From Octopus sinensis (lineage: Eukaryota): DNA of 41,631 bases. Each line of letters begins with the position of its first letter. The stretch's first letter is position 1. Shown here piece by piece: positions 5,903-38,210 of the stretch. The stretch is taken from contig NW_021835280.1 of NCBI RefSeq assembly GCF_006345805.1, positions 1 to 41,631 on the forward strand. Reading direction: 5' to 3'. The translations under genes were made by a program, and so were the position numbers. The notes below the pieces were generated by a model. It did not search any database. It worked only from the letters and a program-made list of their open reading frames with translations, and was not told where the DNA came from.

Positions 5903-6044
5903 TTAATTCTTTGATTGAGAGGACGCGCGAATAGATAGGCAGTTTCCGCGCAATATCGCGAGCGAAATGCGCTGAAAAAGCCAGCTAGACTCACGTCTCT
6001 CGTGCCTCAGTGCCGGCCATGCCACCTTGAACGATATTGTTAAG
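5903..6044 (-). mobile_element. CRE-like RLE retroelement 3' fragment (minus) joined to a short inverted upstream CRE piece (plus)
   Basis: Minus: RESSWLFQRISLAILRGN..SKN* (RLE C-terminus). Plus 6000-6044: SC.SAGHATLNDIVK, versus HAALNDIVK in the copy at 24335-24571. Confidence 0.75.
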
Positions 6045-6045
6045 C

Positions 6046-9089: not shown

Positions 9090-9301
9090 TAATCCAAACG
9101 AACTGTCACCCCGCGTCTATTTTTCTCTCGTGCTGTGGCTGATGTAGACATCCGGTTCCTCAGTGAAATCACTGATGACGGCGTCACTCGTCAATCCAGA
9201 GTGCATGTAATATGCATGGAACCTTCGGCCGGAATGATAGCAGTGAGATTCGAACCCAGAGCTTCGCAAAACTGCCAAATTCTTCAGGCACTGCACCACC
9301 C
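9090..9301 (-). mobile_element. Probable tRNA-derived SINE
   Basis: Minus strand starts GGTGGTGCAGTG (A box) with GGTTCGAATC (B box) about 33 nt later, followed by a GC-rich body with short hairpins. No full cloverleaf. The 3' boundary is uncertain. Confidence 0.5.
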
Positions 9302-9562
9302 TTTTGTTATTGTTGCGTTTTTAAATCAAAGCTGCAGCGTGGCAAATAAACACAAATAACTTTCCATCTACTGAAATAAATCCAATCAACGAAATTCAGC
9401 AAAAAACACAGTTGACTACAAAGTTTAGAAAAATTTTCAATATCTCTTATCTCAGAAGAATGAAATCTTTAAGTGTCTCCATTTCCACCTGTCCATTTAA
9501 TTAGGAATTAGTCTAACCACAAAATTCAAAACCCATTCAATCTAATTGGTTTAGGTAATTAT

Positions 9563-11414
9563 TAGGGCAACCAGAAATATGACCTTAAAAAAGTTAAATA
9601 TGACCGTAAAAAATATGACTTTATGACTTTAAAATTCTAAAATATAACTTAAAAATATTAAAATATGACCTAAAAAATCAAAATATGACCTATCGAATTT
9701 TGATTTTTAGATATTCTGAATTTGAAAATATGAAAAAATTAAACATTTCAATCCATGAATTTATTATAATATTGCATCATATAATATTTAATATTTTCTG
9801 GCTTGAAGTTTCTATCCTTTTCGAGCAATTTATTCAGCATAGAGAAGCTTCTTTCTGCAGATATTGATGTTGAAGGACATTTCCATAAGTAAATAAATGT
9901 TTCTGGAGAAATACTAGAAATTCTAGCATTTTTAATATTCGTCCATGGTAACATACTTATCCGCTTTAAAAAATACTTGTTGATGTCACAATTATCCTCA
10001 CCAAAATTAACGGAATCAATGAATTTAATTGCATCTTTAATTGTATAAAATTTTTCTTGGCATTTTCTGATTTCATCAATAATAGGGTTGTATGAAGCCA
10101 TTAACTCTGCCAGATTTTCCTCCAAATTTTCAGAGCTAACAGCATTTTTCGCATTCATCACAATCTTTCCACAATTTGGATAGGATAAGACAATTTCGTG
10201 AACTCTTGAAAGATGTCGACTATAATATTTTGCTGCGTCCAACCAGCTGCCCCATCTTGTTAGAACAACATCAGGTGGAAGTCCAATAACTGTAAAAAGA
10301 CTCCTCCGGGAGGGATTTTTTACAATCGACATTTTGATAGACGAGATTAAGTCGTCAACATATTTATAATGTGCTCTAATCTTTAATGCACAATTGTGCA
10401 GAAGATGAGCAAAACAAGTTATATGAATCATTTTAATATACATAACCTTCAATGTACTCGCTGCTAAAGTCATATAACGGGCAGCATCAGAAATAAATAA
10501 TAAAAAATTTTCCTTTTTATATCATAAATTCGAATTGTGTCATCCACAATTCTACAAATTGCAGATGCATCACAAATTTCAATTTCCAAACAATTTAATA
10601 AATAAATTTTTTCAGGACTTTCAATAGTCCCACAAAGAACGTTAACAAATTTCTGTTTATTGATTTCCGTTTCATCAACAAGTATGAATATATCTTTTCC
10701 AGAAATAATTGTTTTAAGCATTTCAATCAATTGATATTGCAAATCTGGAACTATATTTCTGCACCAACTTTCGCTGGGAACAGTAAATCCGAGATTATTA
10801 AAAAAATTAATAAAGTGTTCATTTCTTATTTTGTAAAGAGGTATATTCGCCTTCGTCATCATTTCGACTAAGCAAATTCCGAAATTTTTCTTTGCTTCAA
10901 GTTTCGGAAGAGTGTTGAGTTGCGTTTGAAATTTTGTCTGTTCCTTTTTATGCCGGGTAGTTTCCCTGTGCTGCACCACATTAAACTTTTTCGTAAAATT
11001 AACAAAAACTGAGCATTTCAAACAAAATAAACGTCCAGCTGAATCAATCTGAAATTCAGACGGGTATCGTTTAATTATTTTATTTAACTTTTGATTGTTA
11101 GATTGCTTTTGTTTCGGCATGTAAAAATCTATAATATTTAAGCGGCCAACTACCAAAACGTGTGAAAACGTGTTATTGTCAAAATTTAAACAAAGATTAA
11201 TAAAAATATATGATTTAATAAATATAAATATGACCTAACAAAAAAAATATGACCTAAAAAAATAATATGACCTAACGGCATAAAATATGACCTATAAGAC
11301 CTAAAAAAATTAATAAAACTATTAAAAAATATAATAATAGTTTATTAATTATAGAAATAACATCAATATGACCAATAAAAAATAATATGACTTATATGAC
11401 TTTTGGTTGCCCTA
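9563..11414 (-). mobile_element. Near-intact hAT-superfamily element (CGGBP1-like zinc finger N-terminus), transposase with one frameshift
   Basis: TIRs TAGGGCAACCA / TGGTTGCCCTA; TSD GTAATTAT (9555-9562, 11415-11422); many (GG)TCATAT subterminal repeats. ORFs 10470-11156 and 9748-10473 carry C..C..H...H, VDET, (SDAARY)M, HITCFAHLLH, TRWGSW, SISAERSFS. Confidence 0.9.
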
Positions 11415-13155
11415 GTAATTATTTTTTAGAAATAAGAGTGCGTATAACAATAAGAACTAGTAAACCAAGTATTTTTTAAGACAAAATCAGAAACTCATCA
11501 AGACTAAAATAACTTCCAAGAATCTTTTAAAACATGTTTAAGTGGAAAAAATGCACAACTAAGGCCTATTACCAAACGAACTGGGAATTATTCATAAAAT
11601 AATTTATGTGTACTTACGCTGTCTTTACCTGCACCCGGTTTCCCTCAGACTACCAATTCTTTTATACAAAGAAAAGAAGTTTGACGAAGTACAAATAAAG
11701 GATAACTCACAATCTCCCTTGCGAATTGATAACCGAAAACAAGTGACCATTCTACCTTCTCTCGATGACTCTAGGAGAAGAAGGCTGTACACAGAGTCGA
11801 GAAAAAATTTTGAAAATTTAGTATTAGTAAATATTTTAGTAATGCATGTATTTGCGTTCTTGCGTAATAATAAAACTAAAATCAACACACATTTAATAAC
11901 ATATTCATTACTTGGTTATCCTAACTTTCCTAGTGTGTAGAAGTCTAATAGCAACTAGGAGACGTACAGATATGATCAGTTTATCGGCTCTCCTCCCGTC
12001 GTTATTAAAGATTCAGGCACTGGCAATAAAAATTCTGATTTCAAAAAAGAATTATTTTCACAAATGATCTGACTAAATGTGATTTTTTCTTGTTTTGAGA
12101 TTTGATATTCGACTCTCTAAAAGTGAAATTTGTTCTAGAGATCAAAAAAATAATTTAAATAAATTTTTTAATAGTTAATTTAAAATTAATTGGTTTAACT
12201 TTTAGAATATTTAAATTTATTATTTGCATGTGACTGGTTTTTACTTGTTTTGTGCTCTTTACGCGTATTAATATTTTAGTACACATTAGTTCTTTTGAAT
12301 TAGAATTTTTTCCTTATTAAGTAAATAATTTGTTATATTCATTATCGTGCGAATGATGTTAATAATCCATTCTATGAAATTGAATGCATTTCCTTTTTTG
12401 TGGGTTCTGCAGGCAATCGTGATTATAATTTCTTACTGACGCAGTTTTTTTATTTTGTTAATTTTTTTGTAGTAAAAGATTAGTTGCCTGAAAAATTTTT
12501 TTTGAATACAGTCAAGCTCTTTTAGGGACCGACAGAATTGTCCGGTATATCGAACAAGTTATTAAATTTATTTATAACAAATAAGTGAAACTGTAAAATT
12601 GATGATAATATGTCACATGCCTCAGGGATTACTATGCCCACTCGTTACCTCCGAATTATTTCTGAGAAATAATTGATTAATGATTTTTCAATTTTTTAGA
12701 AAAATTAATAATCAATCACAACGACATAAAATTCAACCTATATATTAGGTTAATTAGAGTACAATTTAATGATATACTAAAAGATGCTTTAAAACAAATA
12801 AATTAAAATAATATTTTTATACAACAAACCATTTTGACTGATAAGCACATTAAAACATATTTTAAAAATGTGAATTGTGTGAAACGCTTTAAAGGCACAT
12901 AATTTGATAGTTTTATAATTAACTCTAACCAGTTTTTAGTTTTATTTAAAACATTTTTTGAAATGTAAAAAGATAAAGGTTTAAAATCATCTGTAGATCT
13001 CTTATAAAAAACTCAAACTTTATCCAGTTTTTTAGTTTAAAATCATATATAGATCTGAAGTTTAAAACGAAAAATTAAATTTGTCCTTTTTTGATTCTTT
13101 CATGTGAACAATCTTTGTATCTCCATTCGAAAATTCTACTTTAAATTTTTTCAAA

Positions 13156-13400
13156 CCCTAAACCCAACCAATTCCCTAACCTTCACCCAAACCTAACCTT
13201 CACCCAAACCCTAACCTTCACCCAAACCCTAACCTTCACCCTAACCTATACCCTAACCCTAACCTATACCCTAGGAATAGGATAGGAAGTTTTATTGGAA
13301 ACAGAGAAGGGTTAAAGGTTAGGGGGGAGTTTGTATAATGAAACAATAGGACTACCCTATCGACTTCTTCCCAGAAAAAAAAAAAAAGATCCCCTCAAGT

Positions 13401-13437
<37 letters not shown>

Positions 13438-13636
13438 CTTTTCTACCTCTGCAGGTACGTCCCAGTGACAATTGAGTTGGATTTATAACCACTTATAGCT
13501 TTTTCGACAGTTTCACCGACCATGGAGGATTTACTTTCAAGCCACAGGGGGATTGGATCTTCAACTTTTTGGTGGTAAGCAAGCTTCAAAGCGAGCCTGC
13601 GAGACTTTTCTTAACCTATACCCTAACCATAACCAT
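13156..13636 (+). repeat. Interstitial telomere-like hexamer array (CCCTAA variants), split by a 338-nt insertion
   Basis: 13156-13273 is built of CCCTAA, CCTTCA, CCCAAA and CCTATA hexamers (18-bp higher-order unit about x3) and resumes at 13612-13636. Confidence 0.85.
13274..13611 (-). mobile_element. 5'-truncated non-LTR retroelement-like insertion
   Basis: Flanked by a 14-bp direct repeat TAACCTATACCCTA. On minus: 55-codon open frame ending TAG (13443), then A34, T13, AATAAA and a terminal (CCTAT)-type repeat. Confidence 0.55.
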
Positions 13637-14355
13637 GAGATAAAACAGCATTCTTAATTTATTGTTTTTTAATGATAATGGTTAAGCATTGAAAAAATAA
13701 AAATCCATAATATTATTAATTTTTAAATTAATAAGTAAATATATTTCAATCATTTAAATATTTTAAATTGAAATTTTAAAAATTTAGAGCAATGGTAACG
13801 AGCGGGGCATGGTAACGAACAGGGCATGTGACATAATATGTTAATAAGGATTACCTTGTATTTAGCTTTGATTCCGCAATTGCTTTTTGTTTAGATAGTT
13901 GTTCAGGATCGAGTAACGCAGGGTTTTAAGTGCAGGCAAAGTGACAGATTTAGTCGAGCATTTGTTGAACATTTGTGTGTGTTTATTTCTCTATATGTTT
14001 TGGCTCTGTTTGCTTATTAGACTCTGAGTCATCTTCAAAAGCTGATACTATTTGGTATTGCTCAACTAAGGATGATTCCCAATTTTTGTGATTTTGAAAA
14101 TTTTAACATTATTTTTAAACGTCAAACCTATTTGTATGCACATGACAAAAATTTGATACTTGAGTTTTAACCGTAGAATTCGTTGATACAATCAAAACTT
14201 TCTTAAATTTGTGGTTTGTATCTTTTAGTGAACAATCCAGAAACCATTTTGTTTGATATTGTGAATAGTATTGTCAAACAAAGCAATCAAGTCTTTTCGG
14301 TTACCTAATCACATTCGAACAAAACATTCCAATAAGATGGAAAATCACCGATATA

Positions 14356-14660
14356 CAGTGGAATTAAAGACTACTTTAAAACATTCAGGTTTATTTGAAC
14401 TTATCACTTTTCGGGGGATTTTTAGCTAATTCTCTTTTCATAAAGCACCATACATGCTCTATTGGGTTAAGATCCCGTGATTGCGATGGCCAATCAAGAA
14501 TAATATATTTTTTGGTTTCGAAATGTGCCTTAACCATACGAGATGTATGGAATGGAGCATTATCCTGTTGAAAAATAAACGAGGATAAGCCCATTTTTTC
14601 AGCTGATTGGTCCAGATTATTAGACAGTAAATTTATATAATATCCAGCAAATCTTTCGGA
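14356..14660 (-). mobile_element. Tc1/mariner 3' fragment
   Basis: TA|CAGTGG terminus; GYYINLLSNNL..FIFQQDNAPFHTS..WPSQSRDLNPIEHVW. Confidence 0.8.
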
Positions 14661-15560
14661 TCTTGCCTGGATGGTGCTTTTTCGGATGGGCTCACTACCT
14701 GGGATCGCTCCTTTTCTGAGAGGCCCGAAGATTTCTCCTCCCAACGTGCCTGGGACTCTATTGCATGCCGAGCGCGTGTGTCTGAGCTCTCTGCAACCCT
14801 TGATCAACACCGCTGGCATGCCTTCGTGCGGCATCCGCCCCTCACTCTGGCAGCTGGCTGAATGCTCTTCCTCTCTCCAGCATCGGGACGTTGCTAGACG
14901 ATGCTGCCATACGCATCGGAGTGGCTCACCGTCTCGGCTGGATGTTTGTGCAAAACACCGCTGCAGATGCGGTGAGGACGTTGACGAAAAGGGACTGCAC
15001 CCACTTTCCTGCAAGAGGAGCGCAGGCAGGGAACACAGACACAAGGCCCTCAATGAAATCGTGAAGGCCGGTCTCGAAATGGCGGGCCATTCGTGCCTCC
15101 TCGAACCGGTCGGACTCGATCGGGGAGATGGCAAAAGGCCTGACGGATGACAATATTCCCGTACTCGTCGGGGAAGGCCCTCGTATGGGATGTCACCGTT
15201 GTGGATACCTTTTCGAAATCGAGGATCCATTCTTCTGCGGCAAACCCTTGTTCGGCTGCAAACCACGCCGAAAAGATCAAAATACACAAATATTCTTCGC
15301 TCGCAGACCGCTACCGCGTTACGACGGCAATCGCCCTGGAGACCGCTGGAGTTGCAGTAAAGGAGACTGACTCGTTCCTCAAAGAGGTCGGGAAGTCCAT
15401 CGGGAGGAGGCTCAAGGACTCGAGAGAGGGCCTCTGGTTCCGCCAGCGCATCGGCCTGGCCATTGTTCGGGGCAACGCACACTGCGTCCTCGCCGCTGGA
15501 ACTTAACAATTTTCGGTGTTAGTTGTTTTTGTAAATAAAAAAAAAATTAAAAAAAAAAAT
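14661..15560 (+). mobile_element. 5'-truncated CRE-like non-LTR retroelement (CCHC + RLE domain, poly-A tail)
   Basis: CRCG..HPLSC..GREHRHKALNEIV..LEPVGL..KRPDG.TIFP..LVWDVT..ETAG..QRIGLAIVRGNA*, followed by AATAAA and an A-rich tail. Frameshifted. Confidence 0.85.
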
Positions 15561-15618
15561 TAATAGGATTAGATCGAAGATTGATGTCAGAAGGCCAGTT
15601 TACGATAAAAGAAAATTC

Positions 15619-17067
15619 GGTACTTTTGTAGTAGTCTACAGCCACTTTCTAGCGAGTTTCAAAATAATACTATTTTTTACAGTGATAATATATGTGTTTT
15701 ATAATTAATTACTATAAAAAATGAATTATTTAAAAAATGAATTATTTACTAATTTTTTTTAAATATTTAACTCATACCTAATCACATTCTTAGTACCGAA
15801 AAGGTACTTTTGTAGTAGTCTACAGCCACTTTCTAGCGAGTTTCAAAATAATACTATTTTTTACAGTGATAATATATGTGTTTTATAATTAATTACTATA
15901 AAAAATGAATTATTTAAAAAATGAATTATTTACTAATTTTTTTTAAATATTTAACTCATTTATCCTCTACTTTGGTCTGAGGTGGCCAGCATATTGATAT
16001 AGCTTCGACAATTTTTCCAAATTCCTGTTTCTTGTGTTTTTGCCTCCAGATAAATTCTGAGAAGTAGCTATTCATATGCCTGCGGACAGTCCCTCTGTCT
16101 CTTCTTATTGCGCCATTTCGCGCTCCCCCACATTCTATTAACTAATTATTAATTTCAAACCGTTCAATGTGTTGTGTGTGTGCTCCCGTAGTAGAGTCGA
16201 CAAAGTGGTATCTGTGATTCACAGTTAAATGATGATATCCTGCACTTTCAAGGAATTCCGAAGAATATCCTTTCCAACAGTCCGATATTAAAATAGTTCC
16301 TTCTTCAACATTGTTCAATATCGCATTTGAGAGAGTCTCCATTGTACGGTCTGGGATCATCTCAAGGAAACAGCTTTTTGTCTCTCGACATATCCATCCA
16401 AATACCCATTGCTTGGGCAATACTCGGCCTTTGTTAAATTTGCGTTTTGAGAAATGACTCTCATCTATCTCGACTACCATTCCTTCACTTCCTAATACTA
16501 TTTAAATATACACTAACCTATTTTCCTTCTTCGACGAGATGTGAGTGATTGTATGCAAATATCACGAAGGTACATCGACCAATCCACAGTCGTATGCCCA
16601 GCCCACCCCAGATTGTCTGAACACACTTTGACCGATGAATATGTTATTGGCCCACAAGAAAATAAATCTTATGATATCCTCCAAAGGTACTCTGGCTCCC
16701 TCTAGCCAAGTTCCTGTACATTTTTACAACGTATTTTATACCGGCTTTCAATCCAGAACTAGTTCTGCACTCTCTTTTGTGACAATACCATACCGGTGGA
16801 TTGCACATTCTGAGGGACATCGAGTGGCCGCGGCTGCATAACTTGACGATAGGCACTATTCCATTAGTTTGCAGGAATTTTGTGGCTTCGGTAGTGTCTT
16901 TTGGTAAATTGAACAGGTTGAGGTCACGTCTCATTTAAATTTATAACACGTTGGATTATTATTTTATTTTATAGTAATTAATTATAAAACACATATATTA
17001 TCACTGTAAAAAATAGTATTATTTTGAAACTCGCTAGAAAGTGGCTGTAGACTACTACAAAAGTACC
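15619..17067 (-). mobile_element. Merlin (IS1016/IS1595-like DDE) transposon with duplicated left end and two introns
   Basis: About 100-bp TIRs starting GGTAC; 8-bp TSD GAAAATTC (15611-15618, 17068-17075). VEIDES, WVFG, ISDCWKGY, VNH..FVD..GAHTQHIE. Introns at 16492-16517 and 16135-16160. Confidence 0.92.
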
Positions 17068-17721
17068 GAAAATTCATGTTAGGACCACAAATACGGGCGG
17101 TATTCTAAATAGAAGGGATCCGATATATCGAAAATTAATTAGCAATGATGGTCTATTGATGAATCGGGACCAGAAGTTTAGTCCGGTTTCAAAGGAATTC
17201 CGGTATAGCGATTTAAAGGGATTTGACTGTATGTGGTAAAAACCACAGATATGTTTTACATTTGAATTAAAGACTACTTTAAACATTCTCAATTTTGTCC
17301 TACGTGTGCTCATCCAACTATGTATGTCAATCATAATAGAAATAGTCTGGGAATTCTCCTAATATACATTTTAATTACTAATTCAAATCTCATCAATGTT
17401 TTTAATAAGACTTTCAAATTAAGTAATTTATTACATAAATTGCTTAAAATAAATAAAAATGTCCAGCAGTCGTCTCCGGGAGGGATTTTGCGAAAATGTC
17501 GGGGTATTTAAATCCCATATAAAAGACCTGCCTCCACGGAAAGGAAATGTATTTATTCGATCTTTTTGTTGATGGGAAAGAGAGAAACCTTTAAGAGACA
17601 TCGTTAAAGGACAAGTGTCGAGGCATTCTGTCGTTGTTCATTCAGAATGATAGACCTTCCTTGGACAAATACTTAAGTCAAATTGAGATATCAGAGAGCA
17701 CATCCCAACTGCAGTCATAAT

Positions 17722-19119
17722 TAGGGCACCAAAAGTCAATAATGTCAACTTTTGGTCAACTTGGTCAATTTTTCCATTTTTAGGTCACCTTTGTCAATTT
17801 TTTGTATTTTTTTTTTTAATTTTTTGACCATGCTAACTTAATTTTATGTTTTGTGTAATGCCTAAATCTAAAAAATCTACCTATTCAAAAGAAAGCCTCT
17901 AAAATTATTAATGAATTCTCTAATGAATTTTCAATTACTCCCGACGGATCATTATATTGTAAAATATGCGATATTTGTTGACATTCCATAAAAATGGTCT
18001 GTGAAAAACACAGATTGACGCAATGTCAAAATTTTGGCAGAAAGACGTGTTAGTGAGAGTATCCAATCGTTAATTAATGAAGGATTTTCTAATTGTGATG
18101 ATCTGATGCCGGTACGATAAATTTGTCAATATTCTTATTGGGAAAATACTGATCCCAAAACAGTTATCTTATTGATTGTATTGTATTAAATTCTTCGCCG
18201 AACGCATCAATTGTATCCAGATTATGGACGATACGATCCGATATCAATATTGAAAGGAAAAATTTTTACTTGTTGTTAACCGACGCGGCAAAGTACATGA
18301 TTTTAGCAGGAAACACTCTGAAAAATTTGTACCCAAACCTTTCCACGTAACATGCATTGCACATTTGATACACAATTGTGCTTTAAGGATAAAACAAGTT
18401 TTTACCCTACAGTGGATAACTTAATAGCCTCCATTAAAGAACTTGTTCTCAAAAACAGTAGTCGAAGGCACTATTTTCTGAAATAGGACTACCTCCAGAA
18501 CCTATTGTTACGATGGGGAAGCTGGCTTCGAGCACCAAGTACTACGTGGAGCATTTTCCCAAAGTGTTGGAAATATGCAATTCGTTAAAAGGAGAATCCC
18601 TATTGATTCGGAGGGCAAAAGATCAATAACCATGAGGACTTATTAATGATTTAAAGAAATATGGAATCACTATTCTCCACTTGCAGATGTTCTTCCTGAA
18701 ATGAGTCCACAAACTTTTTCAATCGAGAAGAGCTATTAATTTTTGAAAATACTCGATCTGAAGGAAGATCCTGCAAAATAAAAGAATATATTGAGAAAGA
18801 ATGAATAAGAATTAAACTATGAAAATTGTTAACGGAGAATAAAATTTTTCGCCTATGGAAAAGTTGCGACTACTTCAATGTCAGGCAACTACATGTTCTG
18901 TGGAGCGTCATTTTCAATTCTCCATAAATTTTGGGAAAAGATCGGAATTTTAAAACCCGGAAACCTTAAATTTTATATGATTTTATAACTCCTGATTTTA
19001 AAAAATTCTTGGCTCTTTTTAGGTCAACTTTTTGGTCAACTTTCGTTTTTTTTGGGTCAATTTAGTTGACTTTTGGAGGTCATTTTTTGATTTTTTAGGT
19101 CAACTTTGTGGTTGCCCTA
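17722..19119 (+). mobile_element. Degenerate relative of the 9563-11414 hAT
   Basis: TIRs TAGGGCA(A)CCA / TGGTTGCCCTA; TSD GTCATAAT (17714-17721, 19120-19127); GGTCAACT subterminal repeats; decayed LTDAAKYM, HVTCIAHLIHNCAL and VERHF-like frames. Confidence 0.85.
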
Positions 19120-19473
19120 GTCATAATTAATAAAAAGAACTAATTAACTATTTAATTGCCTAACTGAATTTTCAGAATGAACAAAGGATGACACTTCACA
19201 AACCTCGTATCATTCTTTTTCATCTTCTCTGTCTATGTCAACTTCTGAGAAGGTAAAAATAAATCCTTCTGATTGGGGAGAGTTATTCACATACGTTAGC
19301 CACGTTAATGACGATACGTCAATGTAGTGGTTGTCCAGGCTGCAAAAAGAGTCTTCTTGCATCCTAGGAGCGTCCTTCTTTTTTTGAGTCTTAAAACGTT
19401 ATATTTTCGAAGAAAATTAATTAGCATAAAAATTATAATATATTATAATATCCGAATAGAAAATTAATTCGTA

Positions 19474-20141
19474 ATGTCAGATAGATCGGAAAAATCAGGA
19501 TTAACTCGCGAATCTTTTGAGAAAGTAAATCTATAAAACAAAAATTTAGAAAAAACAAAAATTCAACTGTAAAAAAGCCCACGAACTCCTCGAATGGATC
19601 AAGAATTTAATAGAACGGTCAATTCTCTACTGAAGGAGACATGGATAACTTTGCTTCAGTGCTCAAAGATGGGACAGTTTTAATACGGTTTGTAATCCAT
19701 GAAATATTCTAATTGATTGACCCAAGTTCTTTCAGGCAAACAATTATCTATAAAAAAGGGAAACACGATTTTTGCTGCAGGGGAGAACTAAAAACCAAGC
19801 GTCAAAGACTTGGAAAAAGTCCATTTAATCTGACAACTGGCGAACAATTCAAATTGTAGATGTCTTCGAGCAACAAGGACTTGCAGTGTTTTGAATACCA
19901 TAGAAACCATTGGGAGAAAAGTCGGTTCCAAATAAATTATGTTTCAGGCTCATGCAGTCAATAAAGGATTTGGTCCCAAAGAATCGCGCAAAAATACTCG
20001 AAATTTTCACACGAGCAGCAGCTGAAGGAGGCCGAAAATACCCCTGGCTTGATGAGTGGTCATTATAATACTCCCTCCACACCTCAAATCCATAAAAGAC
20101 GTGATATTGGAACGTATAACCAAAAACCAGGAAATAATTAA
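19474..20141 (+). CDS. Transgelin/myophilin-like calponin-homology protein
   Basis: MSDRSEKSGL.., ELLEWI, FSTEGDMDNFASVLKDGTVLIR, VDVFEQQ, GFGPKESRKNTRNF..EQQLKEAE (calponin-repeat-like). Short introns; at least one apparent 1-nt indel near 19615. Confidence 0.75.
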
Positions 20142-20199
20142 CATTAATTTGATTTTAACTAATTGAGGTGGATTTATTTAATAATTGAATCCCGTATGG

Positions 20200-20527
20200 T
20201 CATCATCAATGTGTCTGAAGAATGGGAATAACTTTCCTTGAGGAGAAAGGTTATTCTATATTTGCAGGATAGAAATTTTTTTAATGGTCAACGGAAACAG
20301 TGTAACCACTGTAAAAATAAGGCGATGACCGTTGAATATTTAGCTACTAAGTGCGGAAATATGCTGTACCATGATTACACATGGAGACACAACGAGGTGG
20401 TGAGGTGCCACCATTTTCTGCTCTGCAATAAGTATGCTTTGAGGCGGTCCAGAAAGTTGCGAACTTGTCGAGTTCAATCGGTGTGTGAAAACTCGAATGT
20501 GTGCATTAAGGTGGATACCTCCATGTA
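20200..20527 (+). mobile_element. RLE-type non-LTR retroelement fragment (zinc knuckle region)
   Basis: CNHC..TVEYLATKC..YTWRHNEVVRC..LC.KY..NVCIKVDTS; same family as 29333-30130. Confidence 0.75.
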
Positions 20528-21050
20528 AGTAATGAGTTTTTGAAGCTCTTCAGGGGCATATCTGATGAGCTCTGCATTAACATTATCTGGATTTGGGCTT
20601 TTGACTTGTTTAGTCTGGTCACAGATTTTTTAACTTACGTTAAAGTATTTCTTGTGATAGCTTTCTGACGCCTCCATCGAAAGGATAAAGTGTTTCTTCA
20701 TTTTCAAAATTGAAATATTTTTAAAAGTGGTCGGCTATAGTGTCTGTGCGTTTCTGATTGTTGTAAATGGTTCTTCTGAGTTCATCATGAACTGTTAGGT
20801 TTTCAGATTTCTTTTTTCGCGCTAGCATCTTTACAGATGCATACATTTGTGCTTCGTGTTTGTACTTTCTTAATTTATTTCAAAGTTTTGTAACTCTTTT
20901 TTGTGATTTTTCGAACATTTTTCTTGATTTTGTTTCTTTGGATTTTGAACTCAGCTGCTTTCACTTGGTTGTGGGTGTTTATGTATTTGATACGTAGATT
21001 CTTTTGTAGATGAAAAAGGTAATCTATATGCGGGTTATGTATTCCTTTGA
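20528..21050 (-). mobile_element. RTE-like remnant (start of RT region)
   Basis: Minus KSPNPDNVNAELIRYAP, the RT domain-0 motif; otherwise decayed. Confidence 0.55.
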
Positions 21051-21069
21051 AGGTTTTGGTCGTTTAAAA

Positions 21070-21600
21070 GATTAAACAACGTATGGTTGAGAGGTAAAGA
21101 AATTTCTGCGTCTTTAAAAATCAAACTATACAATATGTTCGTAAAACCAATCTTATGGTACAATTCTTTTTCTTGGGCACTCATAGCGCACGAAATGAAA
21201 ATCTGAATTCCTCCTATAAAATGCAGCTGAAATACATCCTAGGAATCTTTTGGCCAAAACGCATATCAAACAACATCTCTACTCTACTCCAATTACAATG
21301 TACATCCGTTAGACGAAGAAATAAGAAGTAATAGATGGGGCTTATTCGGTCACATCCTAAAATGGACAGGAAAACTCCCGCAAATCTCGCAATGGAACAC
21401 CACTAACGTCCCCCATCCGAGAACAAACTTCCGAGGAAGACCACGAATCACTCTAGCAACCCTCCTGTATCAAAATAAACTTTGATTGGAAAAGGGTTGA
21501 AATCAGCAGACGATCTGAGCACCTGAGGGAATTATCGAGGAACAGAGGAACTTTGGAGCGATTAAGAAGACGCTCTAGGAGAGGGTGGCACAAGCGAGAT
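21070..21600 (+). mobile_element. RTE-like remnant (C-terminal post-RT region and 3' end)
   Basis: LKIKLYNMFVKPILWYN, RWGLFGHIL, PANLAM, FRGRPRITL; frameshifted. Confidence 0.7.
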
Positions 21601-21611
21601 AACTTTACTAA

Positions 21612-22183
21612 CGTTATTTTGCGGTTTGCTTATTAATAATAATATGTCGGGCCATATCTTTGACAAAGCTAGTCGCATATCATCCCGTAGTCTATTTCTA
21701 TGTTTTATTTTTAGAAAAGGCAGACACGACATCGCCATTTCAAGGTGATAAGTATTAAGGAAAGCAAGTATTGATTCCAATGCATTTTATTCAAATGGGT
21801 AATTCTTTAGCCATCTAACACCTAAAACTAAGAAGTGATTATTAATGAAATACTAAAAATCTAAGAATGAAGTACATTTTAAAATAATCTGAACAGACTG
21901 ATTACATTAATTTTATTAAGCTCTGTTGAAAATTGAGTTTCTAATATTATTTAAAAACGATCAAGAAAAGTTGAACTATGCAGCTTGGAATTGGGTCTTT
22001 AACAGGAAAGTAATTATCAAATTTTGTTTTTTGATTTAGAGATGTTGATTAAGATTAAAAAAAATTATCAGGTGGATCAAACCATCAATTAGTTTAAAAT
22101 AGCAATCTACTTCAAATCAGAAAAATTTTCAAATGCTATTGTCAGTTCAAGGTTTTTTGCAATCTGTTGCTAACACTTTAAGA
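21612..22183 (-). mobile_element. hAT transposase C-terminal (dimerisation domain) remnant
   Basis: FLNTYHLE..LKIKHRNRL.DDMRLALSKI, matching the Buster-type TY.CE..LKTKYRNRL..DLRLALS motif. Confidence 0.6.
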
Positions 22184-22185
22184 TA

Positions 22186-23779
22186 CAGTGGGCCCAAAAA
22201 GTCATGGTACCACTTAATAATTTTAGTATTTTACGTTTTTACCCATAAAATATGAATTATTTTGACTTTAATTATTTTTTTTGAAAAATTCAAAGATTCT
22301 GATTTAGAAAATAATTTTAAATCTTTAAAATTAGCGATAATTGACAAAGAAAAAACATTTTTTTTAATTTTTAGCGTTATTTAAGGGTCAATAAGTGTTG
22401 GCACGATGCCTTATTAATATTTTGTTGCATGCCCTTTTGCAACAATTACTGCTTCTAATCTTCTTTTGTATGTATTTATTATTTAAAATTCTTTTTTGGA
22501 AATTTTATTCCACTCCTCACGACAGAATGCTTTTAACTCCACTATATTTCTAGGTCTTCGGTTTCCTATCTTTATTTTCAACGTTTTCCATAAATTTTCA
22601 ATTGGGTTTAAGTCAGGAGATTGACTAGGCCATTTCAGAACATTTATTCTATTATTATTAAGCCATTCAGTAGTTATTTTAGCTTTATGTTTGGGATCGT
22701 TGTCGTGTTGAAACGTCCAATGCTTCTTTGCTTTAATTTATTGATGGACGGAACTAAACAATTTTCCAAAATTTCGACGTACATCTTGGCATCAATATTC
22801 CATCTATGAAAAATAGTTCACCCACTCCTTGAGACGAAAAACACGCCCATAACACTAGGCTGCCTCCTCCGTGCTTAACTGTAGGTATGGTACATTTTTT
22901 GTCATATTCTTGATTTTTTTACCTGAGGCCAAAAAGTTCAATTTTGGTTTCATCTGACCATAATATGTTCATTATATATTCTAAATCTTTATTTAAAAAT
23001 TCTGAGCGAATTTAGTCGCGCTGATATATGGACTTTTCTTAGTAGAGGAATATGTCGTGCCCTCCTTTTATGAATTCCTTTTTGCGCAATGTATTAGTTA
23101 TCGTAGATAACTCAACTTTGATTCCCACGGTCTCTAAATCATCTACCAGCTTGCTTCTAATAATTCTGGGATCATTTGCCACACTCCTTTTTTTCATTGA
23201 ATGAGAACGGCTCGATATCTTTTAGGTGCACCAGACCTCGATTTATTGCAAACATTTTTTTGTTCTTTCAACGGACTATTATATTCCTTACTGAACTTTT
23301 CGGAATATTGAATTGTCTGGAAATTTGGTTGTAACTTTTTTTTTCTTGGTGGGACTTGACGATCATCTGTTTTAGCTCAAAAGAATATTCCTTCCGATTT
23401 CCCATAAAGTAGTAGTGCTAAAAACGGCTGTTTTCGTAATATCAATATTAATAATGCGTTATTAAGTAATAACAAAGCTTGTGAAGAAAAACTTAAAAGA
23501 AATAATCTGAAAGAATGACATTCTCTTATCATATGCACTTAAACTAAAACTGTAGATATAAAAGTCCCAACACTTTTTGACCCTTCAATAACGCTAAAAA
23601 TTAAAAAAAGTTGTTTTTTCTTTGTCAATTATTAATATTTTAAGGATTTAAAATTATTTTCTAAATCAGAATCTTGAATTTTTCAAAAAAAATATTAAAA
23701 GTCAAAATCTATTCATATTTGTTGTAAAAACGTAAATACTAAAATTTATTAAGTGGTGCCATGACTTTTTGGCCCACTG
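22186..23779 (-). mobile_element. Full-length, decayed Tc1-family element with long (about 210 bp) TIRs
   Basis: TA|CAGTGGGCC(C)AAAAAGTCATGG at both ends. Pseudo-transposase [33 protein letters not shown] with many stops. Confidence 0.92.
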
Positions 23780-24600: not shown

Positions 24601-25070
24601 ACGTTTAATCTCAGACGCAATGAGACGCCGGTTTTCAAATTCCAATGAAACATTTTCAATAGGGATGAAAACTTAATGGTAGCATTTCCTCAATAGTTTT
24701 CGTGCCCACGATGAGACATCCTTGTAAACTCCGAGAAGACAAAGACATTGTATTTTCCGTCATATGATTTGACCGAAATGGAAATTACAGCCAAATACAC
24801 TCGATGATAAAAAGACTAATTTTGTGGAGTTAATCAAACCCTTTTTAAAATCAATTAGAATACATGTTGGTGAAATAGCAACAAGTGTCTTAATTTCTTC
24901 GAATAATTTTAAGCTGATAAGGCGTGCAAAGAAGGGACTGAGTCGCCTTTCTTTTTTTGTGGTGTGCAATAAAGTCGATTTATCACCCGCAAGTCGGAGA
25001 ATGATGAATTTGTTCGTCTGGATGATACTCTACTCACCCCTGTGGTTTTCTTGCGTAATTTGGGATTGAC
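24601..25070 (-). mobile_element. MULE/Mutator-like transposase remnant
   Basis: ILIDFKKGLINS..VF..VFGCNFHFGQII*RKIQ, matching the MULE D(F)E..GC.FH..Q..WR motif. Confidence 0.6.
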
Positions 25071-25149
25071 ATTGCAGACTTTCTGATTAAATTATGCTCT
25101 AAACTCTTTGCTTAGTAAAATGTGTGTACCACCACACCAGTAGAACAAC

Positions 25150-25265
25150 TAAGGCATGCAAGAATGCACAAATAAGGGTAACTAATCTAACAAATACCTC
25201 GCCTAAATAGTGAGGTAATGGTCACCCAACCAAAGAAAAACTGCGATCTGTGCCGCTTAACCAAT
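25150..25265 (-). repeat. Outlying copy of the modular repeat found in the PRCP intron
   Basis: Minus TTGGTTAAG..GCAGTTTTTCTTTGGTTGGGTGA (core 25222-25244) followed by an 8-bp stem, just downstream of the PRCP stop and in sense orientation. Confidence 0.75.
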
Positions 25266-25282
25266 GTTAATTAATTAAATTA

Positions 25283-27244
25283 TTAATTAAGCCAACCCTG
25301 TATGATCTCAATCTCACGTCTTCTGGCCAACACAACAGACGGGGGATCGTTATCAGAGGACTCCCTCAAGTCAACGTGGTGGGCCCCCCCTTCGATGACG
25401 ACCACGTGAATTCCCTCATTGTCCTGTCGATAGAAACCCCCTCCACTCCACGGATCCATGTCTCCATTACTGAAGATGATGTTAGTAAATGAAGACAAAT
25501 CACGCACATTCGTCTCCAATGGGATAAACCCCCGTCGTGGAGTCACTCCATACAACTCACTGCACTCCTTATTGACCCTACTACTGTTGTACTCCATTGG
25601 GGGGAACATATTGTCCACACCCTCCCTCGAACACATATAAAGATCCATCTCAGTACAGCTCTGTCATATTATTCACACATGACCACCTGGTACCCCCAGG
25701 GGAGCAAGTCTACTGAGCCATAAGTGTCGGTAAAATCAAAGCAGAGGACTCGAGTGCCCGTGTTGTTGAAGTACAGGTTGAGGGACAGTGCCAGTGCTCG
25801 GACTAACTCCTCTTCGGACATTCCCTTCCCGTTAAAGTATTGGGAAATGGCCTGGCAGTGAGATCGGGGGGTTACGCGGAGTGGGTAGGCAGGGAGGGGG
25901 ACCAAGAGTGTCGAGGGGGATGGGTAGTTCACCATGGATGCGGCAAAAAATAGATTAGTGATATTTTGAATGAGCAGTTCGATATTTCTCTCATTCTGGT
26001 TGCATAAATTTAATTCATTCCACAACCAATCCAAATATTTCGTGTCTAGTAATCATTTATATATAAAATAAACCATTTTTATGGTCATTTAGTATGTTCC
26101 ACAGTGTTTTAATGTTCTCAGGTGAATTGGGTCCTTCTGTTCGGAAATTCTTGGTTATTGTCACAAAGGGGGACCCACAATCTGAGTACCCCTCAAACAT
26201 TAATATTGGCGCAGACGATGCGAGAGCACTAGTCAATTAGTAGTCACCAAACAAGGAAAAACTGAAGCTTAACCAAACTACGTAACCTATCTTAGCTAGC
26301 TAGTTAACACTCACCTAACCAAAGAAAGACTGCCGCTTAGCTAACCAAAACTATAGTGTGATATACACTTAACTAGGCTAAGTGAACCAGAAATGGTCAC
26401 CCAATCAAAGAAAGAATGCAAAATGTGTTACTTAACCAGGATATGTCTCCAACATTAACAAACAGGTTAATGCTCACCTAACCAAAGAATGCCAGTTAAG
26501 CACAGCCAGAGCGTAATTGTGTCACCTGTGCTACGACTATAGACATGTTCACCCAACCAAATAGGTGATTAACTGCGGATACTAACCCGGTGATGTAAGC
26601 AGGGTACTTCATTCTCATCCAAGCCGCCAACATGCCCCCATAGGAGCCCCCAAATACAATAACTTTTGTTTTGGGAGGAAATAAATAGTCAATTAAACTG
26701 ACGTAGTCCAACATGGCTTGTTCAGCAGTCAAATATTCAAATGAAATGTTATTTTGTCCATTCTTGTAGGGAATCGACTCTCCATAATATCTATGTTCTC
26801 CAAACAGGACATAGGCCCCAAATAAGGAGGCAATCTCCCAAATAAAGCCCTGAAATTAATCAGGTTTATGTGAACCGAATTTTCAGCAAATCCTTCGACT
26901 GTCCCCTCGTTGCCCGCATAGAAGAAAACTGGCCCGTCCTTGGTGTAGAATTGGTCAGAATATAAATATTTTATTTCGAATTTGTCGTTGTTGTTGAAAT
27001 TGTAGTGATCAACCTGACATGTAAAAGTATGTGGGCTTACAAATGTCTCAAACCAACCAATTTTGTAATCCTTTTCAGCTTTAAGGGTGTTTTTTGGTTC
27101 TTTCAAAGTTATTTTTATATGTATATCCTCTTCAGGAAGGAGCGAAGAGATGGAAAACACAAATAAGGTCACAGCTAACATCACAAAAACAAAAATTAAG
27201 TCAAATAAATAATATTTATTAAACTTAAAGAATTTTACAAACAT
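25283..27244 (-). CDS. PRCP: Lysosomal Pro-X carboxypeptidase (peptidase S28)
   Basis: N-terminal hydrophobic segment; VDHYNF, GPVFFYAGNEG, LTAEQAMLDY, FGGSYGGMLAAWMRMKYP, GALASSAP, SNGDMDPWSGGG, GGAHHVDLR (Ser-Asp-His triad). Introns of 26-27 nt plus one of 358 nt. Confidence 0.92.
26229..26586 (-). repeat. 358-nt PRCP intron containing 5 degenerate modules (67-86 nt period)
   Basis: Plus-strand core TCACC(C/T)AACCAAAGA.. starts at 26244, 26311, 26397, 26474 and 26549. Removing the intron joins ITG|ALASSAP. Confidence 0.85.
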
Positions 27245-27358
27245 ATTAAATTAATATAACAATTTAATGAATATATTACATTGTCGGTTATGATCTAGAA
27301 CAATACAATATTTAAATATTGTCATAAATTATAATGTCTGGGCCCGTTCTAAGTGTCC

Positions 27359-27385
27359 GAAGTGATAAATCTGATTTATCACTTC
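27359..27385. other. Perfect 13+1+13 palindrome about 115 nt upstream of PRCP
   Basis: GAAGTGATAAATC-T-GATTTATCACTTC, preceded by GGGCCCGTT. Confidence 0.9.
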
Positions 27386-27759
27386 AAATCATCTAAATTA
27401 TTTGTTTAAGATATGAAATTCTTATTGATTTCGATTACTCTTGTTAATTCAATAATTTTTTAAATTATTAAAATTTGAAAAAAGTAACCCAGCTAATTAA
27501 CAAAAACGTGGAAATTAAACTTAGAAATTTGTAACGAACATAAAAATGTAAAATTACTCTATGCGAAAATTTTTTGCTTGCATAAGGTTTGCTTGAAAAT
27601 TTTTAAAGAAAATATTTATTTAAATAGAAAGGCTGTTAGAAGATGGTAAATAAAGACCTTCGGCATTTTTGCCTTTTCAGTCTCTCACACACGCTCGTCT
27701 CTCAGCCACAACCTAAGACTTACTGCCTTACCTGCCATTTTTTTCTCTAGGACCTCAGG

Positions 27760-28050: not shown

Positions 28051-29332
28051 ATCGCTCGAAAATTTCAATTTTCTGACTTCCAAAAAAACTTCAGGTACAA
28101 GTCTTATGCATTAACCTCTATACATACAATAGGGCTTCTTTTTAGACTGCTTTTAACGACTTTGTCAGTCGATGTTTCAGTAAGGTACAAAAAATCATTG
28201 ATTATTATTATTATTAGAACCAAGATGCCACAATGCAAAACACTACAAAAAATCATTGATAAAATGGCAACAATTAAACTGGCAAGAGTTGTGCTAACTG
28301 AGATACCTAGTCAATCAAAAAAACTATTAATGCTTTTTAAAAAGCGGTTGAGAACAGAAAATGCATAAAACATCTTTGAAACTGTTCTTAGAAGTCCAAC
28401 AATTGCTATATTGTTTAGAATATAAACTTTTTGCCAAAGAGATGTTGTTTGCTCTCGGCCAGCTCTTTTATAACTTCAACCATTGTTTGATGACAAAATT
28501 CCTGCCTCGATCATCTGATTAAACACTGTGAGCTTTGTTTCACAGAGCTCGAGCGCTGAAAAATTATTTCGATTCAAAATGGCTTTGGCAAAAATTTTAT
28601 AGTAATTATGAGGCATGAGCTGCTTTAGTCGTGAAAAGAGAAAAGCGTAGATAAAGATCATCACACTACTTATTGAGAAAAAAATAGGATCATATAAATC
28701 AGGGGAGCATTATGAAAAACATGTCTGAAATTAATCAGCTCTTCTGCAGAGAGGAAAAACAGAACTAAGGTAAATAGGAGTGTTAAAAAGAGGCACATTG
28801 GGTGTATCCAAATCTTCTATTTACCGACCAACTATCCCGATTATGCTGAACTCTCCTTTCTTTCGTAGACAAAACTTTTTAGAAATGAAAAACCCGTGCG
28901 TATTGAGTACTGCAGTGGAAACAAAGAGTGGATTCTAAATAAGGCTGAAGAAAATCCCGGAATAAATTGGGTTGATGTAAAGCTCAAGTTTCAGAGAGCT
29001 CATAAAATTCATTCGAAAAGGACTAAAATTAAAAACTGGTTCATTGTTTGTGGGGAAACCCAAGTTTTTACACGCGAATATCTTGCTGAAAATACTGTGG
29101 AAACAGTTTATGCGGAGTTTTCTGACCCCTGGATTGCCATGCGAAACATTGACTTATTCCGACTTCTTTCATGAAAGATGTATTAAAAGCTGTAAAACCT
29201 GGAGGAAAAGCTCATCTTGTTTCTAACTCAAAAGCGTATATTGCCCAAATGGAAGAGGAAATTTAAAAATATTAGGTTGGAAGCCTCTAATAAGTATGTT
29301 GAACTAATTATGCAAATTCTATCTTAAATTAT

Positions 29333-30130
29333 TTAAGAATTCAGATCGTCAGTGATTTTTCTTCTTTGCTTGGAAGAAGAGTTTGCAACAAAATTCTCAT
29401 CATTTTTCATTTCTGCGTCAAAGTAATTGTTTAGCTGAGTGTCCTCACGACATGCCAGCTCCGCAAGTTGATTGGCGGCAGAGGCGTACTCCTCGTTGTC
29501 TACCTTTATCACATGTCTGTGCTCGATAAGCATACTCTCTAGTGTCCTCTTCAGCAAAACGGACTGGATGTATGTCCTCGTTCCTTCTTCAATGGATAAC
29601 TTGTCCATATGACTTTTTAAGAACTTTGAGACAACTCCATCCCATGTCAAGACAATTGGAATAATCTTCACTTTTGCTTAATAGAGAACCGACAGTTCGT
29701 TTGCAGGGAGGTCGTATTTGTGAAATTTATCCACTTCAACTTGCTTTAAACGGTCTTGCGAGGTAACTCCCACTTCGATTAAATGAATTTCTCTTTTCCT
29801 CTTGTCATAAACGAAAATATCAGGTTTATTGAATTGAACTTTCGTTTCAGTCATAATTGACGTGTCAACTCTGATTTCAACATTTTGGGTTGAGATTATT
29901 GACACAACCGAATGTCCTTTCAATTTCCTGTTTCGTTTATTTCCATACATTCGACACTAGTGGAGATGAATACACTTTACCACTTCGTTGTGTCTTCGGA
30001 AATAATCACTGTTTAGCATCCTACCAAACCGCGTGGCTAGATGATCAACAGTCTGCCTGCTTTTTTTGCAGTGAATCGTCAGATAATGTTATGTTCTTAG
30101 AATGACAAACCATGCTAAGTAAATCAATTT
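29333..30130 (-). mobile_element. RLE-type non-LTR retroelement 3' region (zinc knuckle + PD-(D/E)xK nuclease)
   Basis: TVDHLATR..RRHNEVVKCIH, VEIRVDT, KPDIFVYDKRKREIHLIEVGVTS, KYDL..NEL, KIIPIVLTWDG; frameshifted. Confidence 0.85.
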
Positions 30131-36030: not shown

Positions 36031-38210
36031 GAGGAATCACATTTCTCATTAATGTGTCTAATTAGTTTAATTTTTTTGAGAAGCCTATCTCTGACACTCA
36101 GAGACTACGAAATGCGATCCGTCGAAAACTTTTGGAAGGTGGAATACGTGCTGCTGTGAGGACTCTGGCAGACCAACACCGTATAATTGAGCCGTCTGAA
36201 CAGTCCTACGCATCACTTGTTGATCGTCACCCAAGTCCCCCAGACGATCATCGGATTGCTCCTTGCCCAGGACAATTACCCAATCTACTTGTCTCCGAAG
36301 AAGACGTAAAAGATGGGATTCTCTCCTTTGTACCGAGCAGCAGTGGTGGACTAGATGGGCTCCGTCCGGGCCACCTCAAAGATCTTATTGGTCGCAACAC
36401 GGGCAATTCTGGGGTCCGGCTTGTGCTGGCTATCACCAAACTAATGAACAGGATGCTATCAGGGACACTACCAGAAACAATTCGACATGTAATTTTCTCT
36501 GCCAAGCTAATCGCATTCGACAAGAAGGGAGGGGGAGTACGCCCTATTGCTGTTGGCCTGGTCTTTCGTCGTTTGGCCTCAAAGCTTGTTGGCAGAGCAA
36601 TCCTGCCTACGTTGATAACACAATTACAACCAGCCCAATTTGGGGTCGGTTCACCGGGGGGTTGTGAGGCGGCAGTCCATGCTGTCCGAAGATTCACTGA
36701 AAAGAACGAGACACTCCTTTTGTAATCGTCAAAATCGACATTAAAAACGTCTTCAACTCGATACGACGTGATACAATTCTGGAGGATTGCCCCACACATT
36801 ACCCATCAGTGTACAGCTATATTCATAGTTCTTATGGAAAACCATCGAGTTTGGTGCACGGCCAATATCACATCCCATTGTGTTCTGGAGTCCAACAAGG
36901 AGACCCATTGGGCCCTGCCTTGTTTAGCCTGGGAATTGCCCGTGTCACCAAATATTGTTCGACTCCTCTGAAGGTATGGTATTTGGATGATTGCACAATG
37001 GGCGGCCAGCCGAAGTATGTGCTAGATTGCCTTAAAAGTCTGATAGCCCAATTGGAATCCCTATGCCTAACCCTGAACACCAATAAGTGCGAAGTTATCA
37101 ATTTTGGATTTCCGCTTACGTTCTTCGGGGTGCACCCTGCTACCTGAAAACGCAACAGCTCGACAATATCGATTGTCTCTTTCGGATCACAATTGAACGC
37201 ATTACGAATGTGAAATTCGAAGACCAAGGGTGGGACCAAGCGACCCTACCCGTTAACCTGGGCGGACTGGGTATCCCTTCTCCGAATGATCTGGCTTGCC
37301 CCGCATATCCTCTTTGGACTCCAGCCAACTGCTGATCAGGATGATTCTCCAACTCCAAACTGAATCATTTGAAATCACAGAGATGGAGCATTCGAGAGGG
37401 ATGATGCCTGAGCAGAAAAATCGTTACAAGACCATCTGCGAGGATAAATACGAGAGGCTTCTGAACCAATCAAACCAACACAGACGTGCCTGTCTAGTGA
37501 CTGGAAGATGCGAATCGAGTGAATCTTGGATCAATGCACTCCCCGTTGATAGTGTCGGAACCCACCTTGACGACAATACTGTCCGCATTGGCATCAGCAC
37601 CAGACTTGGACTGGAGATTTGCCGGACTCACAAATGCCGGTGTGAGGCCACCGTCGATTGTTATGGACACCATGCTCTCTCTTGTCGAAGAAGTGCAGGA
37701 CGATTCCCAAGACACAAGGCGATCAACGAAATTGTCACAAAAATATCCGGATAACCATACATCTCAAGCGAGCCCTGGAGTCTGCAGGATACCCAGCCGT
37801 ATTTGAACCGGTCGGGCTTGACTGAGGAGATGGAAAACGTCCTGATGGGATCACAATTTTCTCATTTGAAGAGGGGAAACCCCTAGTCTGGGACGCAACC
37901 TGTGTGGACATTCTCTGCCCGTCCAACATTGCCGGGAGCGCAGTGGACAGACTGTATGCCGCGGAAAAAACGATGAGGGCAAAGGAGAGAAAATATGAAG
38001 CCCTGCGAGATCGATTTGTGTTCTGTCCGATTGTGGTCGAGACAACTGGAGGAATAAGTGGGAAATCGCTTCGCTTCCTAAAGAAGCTTGGACGCTTAGC
38101 CACATTAAAAAGCCACGACACACGTGAGACCCGGTGGCTTCTCCAGTTGATTTCCGTTGCTATCGTGAGAGGCAACGCAACGTCAATTATGTTGGCGGGG
38201 TCCACTTCGG

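Follow-up and report, generated by a model that had tools for sequence, protein, structure and literature searches.

Animal introns shorter than 30 nt are known only from myxozoans and Dicyema (PMC13644364). The published dicyemid genome has a mean intron length of 38 bp and a median of ~27 bp, and so includes some longer introns (PMC6736024, PMC6543705). In D. japonicum, only GTa is left of the donor logo and only AG of the acceptor logo, without a pyrimidine tract (PMC13644364). This raises the question of how spliceosomes tuned to such tiny introns handle long ones. Here, we describe a clean test case, a 358-nt intron in a PRCP gene (lysosomal Pro-X carboxypeptidase, peptidase S28) on a 41,631-nt stretch of DNA deposited as Octopus sinensis (NCBI RefSeq assembly GCF_006345805.1, contig NW_021835280.1, positions 1 to 41,631; hereafter, the window). 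All of the extra length of this intron comes from a repeat whose conserved core is donor-like. With about even confidence, we read it as a passenger tandem-repeat array in an ancestral intron that is removed in one ordinary splice. A functional core would be a sign of a specific adaptation; if the core has no function, the locus shows only that repeat insertion can re-inflate introns despite strong shrinking pressure.

Several described systems resemble this intron in part. Intronic minisatellites and short satellite arrays share with it head-to-tail units within an intron, alternating subtypes (here forming a 163-nt dimer) and a short conserved box, and alpha-satellite dimers with their conserved protein-binding box are an analogue of this pattern. 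However, the PRCP array has only ~5 units, its spacer identity is 0.51 compared with 0.47 for random sequence, the two assemblies do not differ in copy number, and we know of no factor that binds the box. Introns derived from introners or miniature inverted-repeat transposable elements (MITEs) likewise consist almost wholly of a repeated non-coding element, but the PRCP intron is ancestral in position and phase (shared with Capitella and Pecten), shows neither terminal inverted repeats (TIRs) nor target-site duplications (TSDs) and has no other copy of the repeat in 40 kb, while one copy lies outside introns. The spliced leader (SL) RNA arrays of nematodes, flatworms and rotifers also have tandem units with a GGTTAA-like start and a GT donor ~37 nt downstream. 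In the PRCP array, on the other hand, the leader is not conserved, no clear Sm site was seen by eye, stem-loops are not conserved, and the units of 67-86 nt lie in the intron of a protein-coding gene. Interstitial telomere-like sequences are represented in the window by an array at 13174-13273 (TTTGGGTGAAGGTTAGGG), with which the core shares GGTTAGG/GGTTGGG and GGTGA; in contrast to such arrays, each core has only about one telomere-like repeat, set within a longer unit, and statistically the similarity is weak. Finally, the ratchet points of Drosophila and vertebrates (bioRxiv 10.1101/006163; PMC8605326) are defined by a juxtaposed acceptor and donor, and the cores of two PRCP units (U1 and U3, see below) have this arrangement, with TTAG|GTGAG(T/C) after a pyrimidine tract. 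The PRCP intron differs from them in being 358 nt long rather than 11-133 kb as in flies, in lacking AG in four of the six cores, in having segments that are not host-sized, and in a host that uses only GTa and AG.

A 358-nt Intron in a Gene with Tiny Introns

The PRCP coding sequence lies on the minus strand (25283..27181), from the start ATG at 27181 to the stop codon at 25285-25283. It comprises seven exons with GT..AG introns, and its spliced translation under the standard genetic code is open and full length (469 aa). The translation matched PF05577 proteins and was 36-43% identical to animal PRCPs. Five of the introns are 24-28 nt long, namely 27040-27014 (27 nt), 26875-26850 (26), 26073-26046 (28), 25875-25852 (24) and 25686-25661 (26), and the remaining one (26586-26229) is ~14 times the usual host length. 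An earlier note on this DNA, made from the letters alone, had described a modular long intron built of repeats in a tiny-intron genome, and this description stands: the intron contains five repeat cores.

The long intron (26229..26586, minus strand) is in phase 2 and reads GG|GTTAGT ... TACTAATTGACTAG|T between codons ...ITG and ALA..., with exon 3 upstream of it ending in ...ATCACCGG. The protein alignment has no indel at this junction, and the same boundaries are spliced in the model of the sole near-identical database protein, P0001, which is labelled 'Octopus sinensis'. The GTTAGT donor is comparatively strong, and a TACTAAT branch-like motif is located 8 nt before the final AG. Introns at the same codon and in the same phase 2 were found in the PRCP genes of Capitella teleta (...GTT GG|GTGAGC...CAG|A GCA; L002) and Pecten maximus (...GAT GG|GTAAGG...CAG|A TCG; L003). 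The position and phase of the 358-nt intron are therefore ancestral. Because Capitella and Pecten share both codon and phase, the intron predates the repeat, and no element created it. Within the intron, the DNA flanking the array amounts to 18 nt on the 5' side (GTTAGTATCCGCAGTTAA) and 15 nt on the 3' side (CTACTAATTGACTAG); this total of ~33 nt is near the usual host intron size. The first array box falls on the real donor (G|GTTAGT).

Separately, the exons beside the long intron, 3 and 4, are partly complementary (26593-26608 and 26185-26200, minus strand), with AGUACCC/GGGUACU forming 7 bp and a 75% match over 16 nt. This pairing could bring the splice sites closer together, and it may be chance (roughly 5%).

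Dicyemids live in the kidneys of octopuses. Since the 24-28-nt introns and the GC content of the window (~36%) fit such a parasite, for which the D. japonicum genome shows 36.7% GC and 49% repeats (PMC6736024), the window is probably dicyemid DNA within the Octopus sinensis assembly, an identity deduced from the tiny introns, the GC content and the host habitat. Both the 'Octopus sinensis' scaffold and the PRCP-like model on it are almost certainly mis-modelled parasite DNA. Specifically, P0001 is encoded on the 482-kb scaffold VCDQ01001777.1 (GCA_006345805.1), and its gene model bypasses or reads through tiny introns. The public model is wrong where it does so, and agrees with ours at the boundaries of the 358-nt intron.

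Anatomy and Subtypes of the Repeat Units

The intron array contains five copies of a 23-nt core, GCAKTYTTTCTTTGRTTRGGTGA, which ends in GGTGA; all are on the minus strand, that is, in the sense orientation of PRCP. These cores end at 26549, 26474, 26397, 26311 and 26244, and a sixth core in the 3' flank ends at 25222. Core-to-core spacings in the intron are 75, 77, 86 and 67 nt, giving a head-to-tail arrangement of units of ~77 nt (range 67-86) in one orientation. Each unit comprises two boxes, TGGTTAAG (or TGGTTAGC) and then, 11-19 nt downstream, the 23-nt core; the first box was recognised ahead of four of the six cores. When the 17-mer TTTCTTTGGTTRGGTGA was searched with up to 3 mismatches, six matches were obtained in the window compared with 0.43 expected, and five of the six were in the PRCP locus, all on the minus strand.

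The units are named U0 to U5 in the direction of transcription. The most diverged core is that of U0, which is B-like (TAATCACCTATTTGGTTGGGTGA, 26549..26571). It is followed by the type A core of U1 (GGCATTCTTTGGTTAG|GTGA, 26474..26493, with an AG|GT junction at 26478/26477), the type B core of U2 (GCATTCTTTCTTTGATTGGGTGA, 26397..26419, with TGGTTAAG ahead at 26438-26431), the type A core of U3 (GCAGTCTTTCTTTGGTTAG|GTGA(GT), 26311..26333, with AG|GT at 26315/26314 and TGGTTAGC ahead at 26347-26340) and the degenerate core of U4 (CAGTTTTTCCTTGTTTGGTGA, 26244..26264, with TGGTTAAG ahead at 26275-26268), which is 19 nt upstream of the real 3' splice site. The solitary copy in the 3' flank (25158..25266, minus strand) corresponds to ~1.2 units, comprising TGGTTAAG at 25263-25256, the core of U5 (GCAGTTTTTCTTTGGTTGGGTGA) at 25244-25222, a spacer, and TTGTGCATTCTT at 25171-25160, which represents the first 12 nt of a further unit's core and closes the fragment. 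As had been noted earlier, this sixth unit is just past the stop codon; its TGGTTAAG box begins 20 nt downstream of it.

Units of the same type could be aligned without gaps. Specifically, the type A units U1 and U3 were identical at 49/70 positions (70%; motif ...GGTTAGGTGAG..TTAAC...), and the type B units U2 and U5 at 52/74 (70%; motif ...TTGGGTGACCATT...), whereas A-versus-B pairs had only the core in common. The spacers had been taken as unique; with 70% identity over 70-74 nt between same-type units, they are not. The ungapped alignment of same-type units, together with the A-A spacing of 163 nt, indicates from sequence that the array is an old A/B dimer tandem repeat, in which alternating subtypes form a dimer of ~163 nt. 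Tandem Repeats Finder reported nothing at the PRCP locus, the copies being <70% alike. An nhmmer search of the 41.6 kb on both strands with the unit profile returned only the six known copies and none in the other 40 kb of the window.

Conservation of the Core and the Preferred Explanation

Mean pairwise identity among the units was 0.74 in the core, compared with 0.51 in the 45 nt after the core and 0.47 between random sequence pairs. The best 23-column window reached 0.75, whereas scores in 20,000 column shuffles never rose above 0.66 (p<5e-5). Note that anchoring of the alignment inflates the contrast between core and spacer somewhat, and that ungapped pairwise comparisons gave the same pattern. 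The core is a genuine island of conservation, which calls for constraint of some kind, homogenisation or a separate origin of the core.

In the explanation that we prefer, the ancestral spliceosomal intron of a dicyemid-type PRCP would have grown from roughly 30 nt to 358 nt by means of a short, old, non-coding tandem array of about five 67-86-nt units, which alternate between A and B in a ~163-nt dimer, and a ~1.2-unit fragment of the same repeat would have come to lie in the 3' flank of the gene. The whole intron would be excised in one conventional splice between its outer sites, using the GTTAGT donor and the TACTAAT branch-like motif. The donor or ratchet look of the cores would stem from their G/T-rich, telomere-variant-like sequence (TTTGGTTAGGTGA / TTTGGTTGGGTGA) and not from a function in splicing. 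Whereas the anatomy, the subtypes, the ancestral position of the intron, the missing structure signal and the lack of nearby copies are shown, three elements of this explanation are inferred: that the intron is spliced in one step, that the repeat is a passenger and that the core arose from telomere-like sequence. For the last of these the signal is weak, and it is kept as a lead.

Several findings weigh against this explanation. If a tandem repeat decays neutrally, its core should be lost at the same pace as its spacers, yet the core is a highly significant island of conservation. The repeat occurs as two separate pieces in PRCP, each sense-oriented, and the 40 kb of transposon-rich flanks are free of it. 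In the intron, the donor-like GGT[GT]A is present 12 times on the sense strand and 2 times on the antisense strand, compared with 0.5 expected (a 23-fold excess in sense), and the similarity between the core and the telomere-like array of the window is weak (P about 0.004-0.09, depending on the null). The earlier note had named a decayed minisatellite as the alternative to its own proposals. This comes closest to the evidence, but pure neutral decay leaves the conservation of the core unexplained: identity stays at about 75-90% in the core, whereas elsewhere in the unit it is near random, and the passenger reading gives no account of this. Because core preservation is not covered, alternatives of low probability stay open in which the core is a cis-acting RNA or DNA element or the one functional box of a dispersed family.

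One of these places the function in DNA, with the cores forming a homotypic cluster of binding sites (for example, for a Myb factor of telomere-repeat type or a zinc-finger factor) through which the intron and the 3' flank would regulate PRCP. The conservation of 23-nt boxes at a spacing of about 77 bp would suit such a cluster, as would the telomere-like GGTTAGG/GGTTGGG in the core and its resemblance to the array at 13.2 kb. In a second assembly, which otherwise differs by 1.1%, the gene is likewise unchanged over its full length, intron included. This comparison was made with 22.8 kb of the second assembly scaffold (VCDQ01001777.1:344841-367615), whose overall identity to the window is 98.9%, rising to 100% across 25100-26700 (1,601 nt). 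There are 149 difference events over 17.8 kb, or one per ~120 bp, and the longest identical block, 24611-27668 (3,057 bp), spans the whole PRCP gene, its intron and the flanks. However, this block covers exons and flanks alike, no matching factor or motif is known, and the single orientation of the boxes is explained by tandem duplication. We regard a DNA-level role as quite improbable. Between the two assemblies compared, no polymorphism in copy number or sequence was present at the array. As a test of constraint, polymorphism was rejected, given that the identical block does not single out the cores. The block fits low diversity around a functional gene.

Splice-Site Likeness of the Cores

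Four AG|GT junctions were found in the intron, at intron positions 61/62, 109/110, 272/273 and 300/301. Those in cores are the TTAG|GTGAG junctions of U1 and U3 only, and the GTGAGT of U3 is a full consensus donor. The non-core sites are CACAG|GTGACA (26520..26530, minus strand, junction 26526/26525) and GATAG|GTTACG (26291-26281, minus strand). Thus, the two cores with TAG|GTGAG and the CAG|GTGAC site pointed out previously are all present. In four of the six cores (U0, U2, U4 and U5), rather than the three counted before, GG or TG stands before GT instead of AG.

These junctions bear on the view that the cores are cis-acting RNA elements which help a spliceosome tuned to ~26 nt to deal with a 358-nt intron, either as zero-length-exon recursive sites (type A) or as sites bound by the U1 small nuclear ribonucleoprotein (snRNP) or by proteins of the heterogeneous nuclear ribonucleoprotein (hnRNP) type (UCUUUCUUU + UUAGGU) that compact or protect the intron. 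In line with it, conservation is far higher in the core than in the spacers, every copy is sense-oriented, a pyrimidine tract-TTAG|GTGAG is present in U1 and U3, and the ~23-fold excess of GGT[GT]A is confined to the sense strand. On the other hand, the hypothetical recursive steps would measure 61, 48, 163, 28 and 58 nt and miss the host intron size (24-28 nt for the other PRCP introns), AG is missing from four of the six cores, and one copy is found in the 3' flank rather than in the intron. Moreover, the ratchet motif follows what is consensus in flies and vertebrates, whereas the signals of D. japonicum are only GTa and AG, without a pyrimidine tract (PMC13644364), and the recursive introns known from Drosophila are 11-133 kb long (bioRxiv 10.1101/006163). 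A cis-acting role of this kind appears improbable to us, and the same step sizes, missing AGs and host signals argue against the stepwise removal of the intron that had been hypothesised.

It had also been pointed out that every GTGA is followed by an AG 19-31 nt later. This holds for six of six cores, but 55% of all GTGA in the window do likewise (P ~0.03, with the range chosen post hoc). A chain of tiny introns was rejected after enumeration of all GT and AG positions, as no series of 19-35-nt steps spans the intron. Nested GT..AG pairs of 25-31 nt were rejected as well: removal of those identified leaves well over 150 nt. A further candidate, that the cores are fossil exon 3/intron junctions, was discarded because the present Dicyema exon end fails to align with the cores. 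The only match of the unit profile outside the locus was the PRCP junction of Capitella, GTGGTTGG|GTGAGCATG (L002 1345-1376), with 17/20 positions identical to U1 (E=0.14), which is probably generic donor likeness. In the literature searched, including both genome papers, we found no mention of the PRCP repeat, of recursive splicing or of trans-splicing in dicyemids.

A broader conjecture can be framed from the same features. In an animal whose spliceosome is geared to ~26-nt introns, rare long introns may stay spliceable through arrays of a dedicated RNA module, composed of a pyrimidine run, a telomere-like UUAGG/UUGGG and a GUGA donor, which would act as zero-length-exon resplicing sites or as landing pads for U1 or hnRNP. 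The PRCP cores would be its first example, and we consider this idea a long shot.

RNA Structure and Small-RNA Signatures

Stems in the spacers had been described as well. The hairpins are real, but the units fold no better than shuffled sequence: on the sense strand, fold z-scores were -1.15, +0.58, -0.31, +0.19 and -1.07 for the units and -1.20 for the whole intron. In same-type pairs (U2 versus U5 and U1 versus U3), the hairpins are at non-homologous columns and show no covariation. RNAalifold found no consensus structure among the units (consensus energy -0.12 kcal/mol). The whole window had no Rfam match at gathering scores, and no SL family; across 25000-26800 the best hit was mir-50 (E=3.5, 16.8 bits compared with a gathering score of 43). 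ARAGORN detected no tRNA.

The array could be a cluster of intronic small-RNA genes (resembling small nucleolar RNA, microRNA, SL RNA or Piwi-interacting RNA genes) in which a conserved promoter or processing box is combined with a variable product. A conserved box followed by a variable segment of ~50 nt does resemble small-RNA gene arrays, and the units start with GGTTAAG and carry a donor, which makes them loosely SL-RNA-like. However, the folding and Rfam results just given do not favour structured products. The would-be leader, that is, the 11-19 nt between TGGTTAAG and the core, differs in every unit, and trans-splicing is unreported in dicyemids in the literature searched. Reading by eye, without a formal scan, turned up AGUUU(U)GG at two unit junctions but no clear Sm site, and no C/D or H/ACA boxes either. 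We consider such a cluster very improbable, and the small structured RNAs suggested in the earlier note find no backing in these analyses.

Mobile-Element Signatures and the Telomere-Like Array

Neither TIRs nor TSDs were found at the array ends or around the 3' copy; TCACC/GGTGA (5 nt) was the only inverted match noticed by eye. These results concern the possibility that the repeat represents a dispersed family of short mobile elements or satellites (MITE-like, introner-like or resembling short interspersed nuclear elements) that was inserted twice in PRCP and amplified locally, the core being needed for propagation. In favour of such a family, two separate pieces are 1 kb apart, the genome is 49% repeats (PMC6736024), and the window is full of fragments of Tc1/mariner-type and IS1595-like elements and of reverse transcriptases. 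A core with a variable remainder also fits a family with one functional box. Against it stand the lack of a further copy in the other 40 kb, the missing TIRs and TSDs and the ancestral intron, which the element did not create. An exact 23-mer core was not found in a metagenome collection (0 matches), one that is not expected to hold a dicyemid genome. A dispersed family seems unlikely, and a self-splicing mobile repeat, as put forward in the earlier note, is further disfavoured by the sixth copy outside introns.

The interstitial telomere-like array at 13174-13273 is G-rich on the minus strand and consists of GGTTAGGG and an 18-nt variant, TTTGGGTGAAGGTTAGGG, with 4 copies at 94%. Outside the intron, this array is the window's one GGT[GT]A hot spot. 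It is on the same strand as the intron cores and has the exact 10-mer TTGGTTGGGT in common with those of type B. Because GGT[GT]A is also concentrated in this array, its enrichment in the intron looks like a property of this G/T-rich sequence type. A 39-nt A/T run is located near the telomere-like array, at 13404-13442.

Neighbouring Genes and Other Features of the Window

Exact look-ups of the last-exon ORF (open reading frame) of PRCP and of ten window ORFs gave no record, a homologue search with the last exon returned no dicyemid PRCP orthologue, and a search with the DDE_3-bearing ORF gave no match at 1e-20. A large structural difference exists between the two assemblies, in that window positions 8778-20257 (11.5 kb) correspond to 18084-22775 (4.7 kb) of the 22.8-kb segment. 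The extra DNA of the window includes ORFs with DDE_3 (14391-15509) and IS1595-like DDE (16145-16501) transposase domains, which suggests polymorphic transposon insertions. A perfect 184-bp tandem duplication at 15619-15959 (1.9 copies, 100%) suggests a very recent event or an assembly artefact. Neighbouring coding fragments are found at 2688-3491 (minus), 28869-29171 (plus), 29336-29677 (minus), 36701-37144 (plus), 22486-22737 (minus) and 5976-6374 (plus), and comprise protein kinase, Methyltransf_4 (TrmB-type), topoisomerase I catalytic core, reverse transcriptase, Tc1/mariner-type DDE_3 and Tc3 HTH sequences. PRCP is a gene island in transposon-rich DNA.

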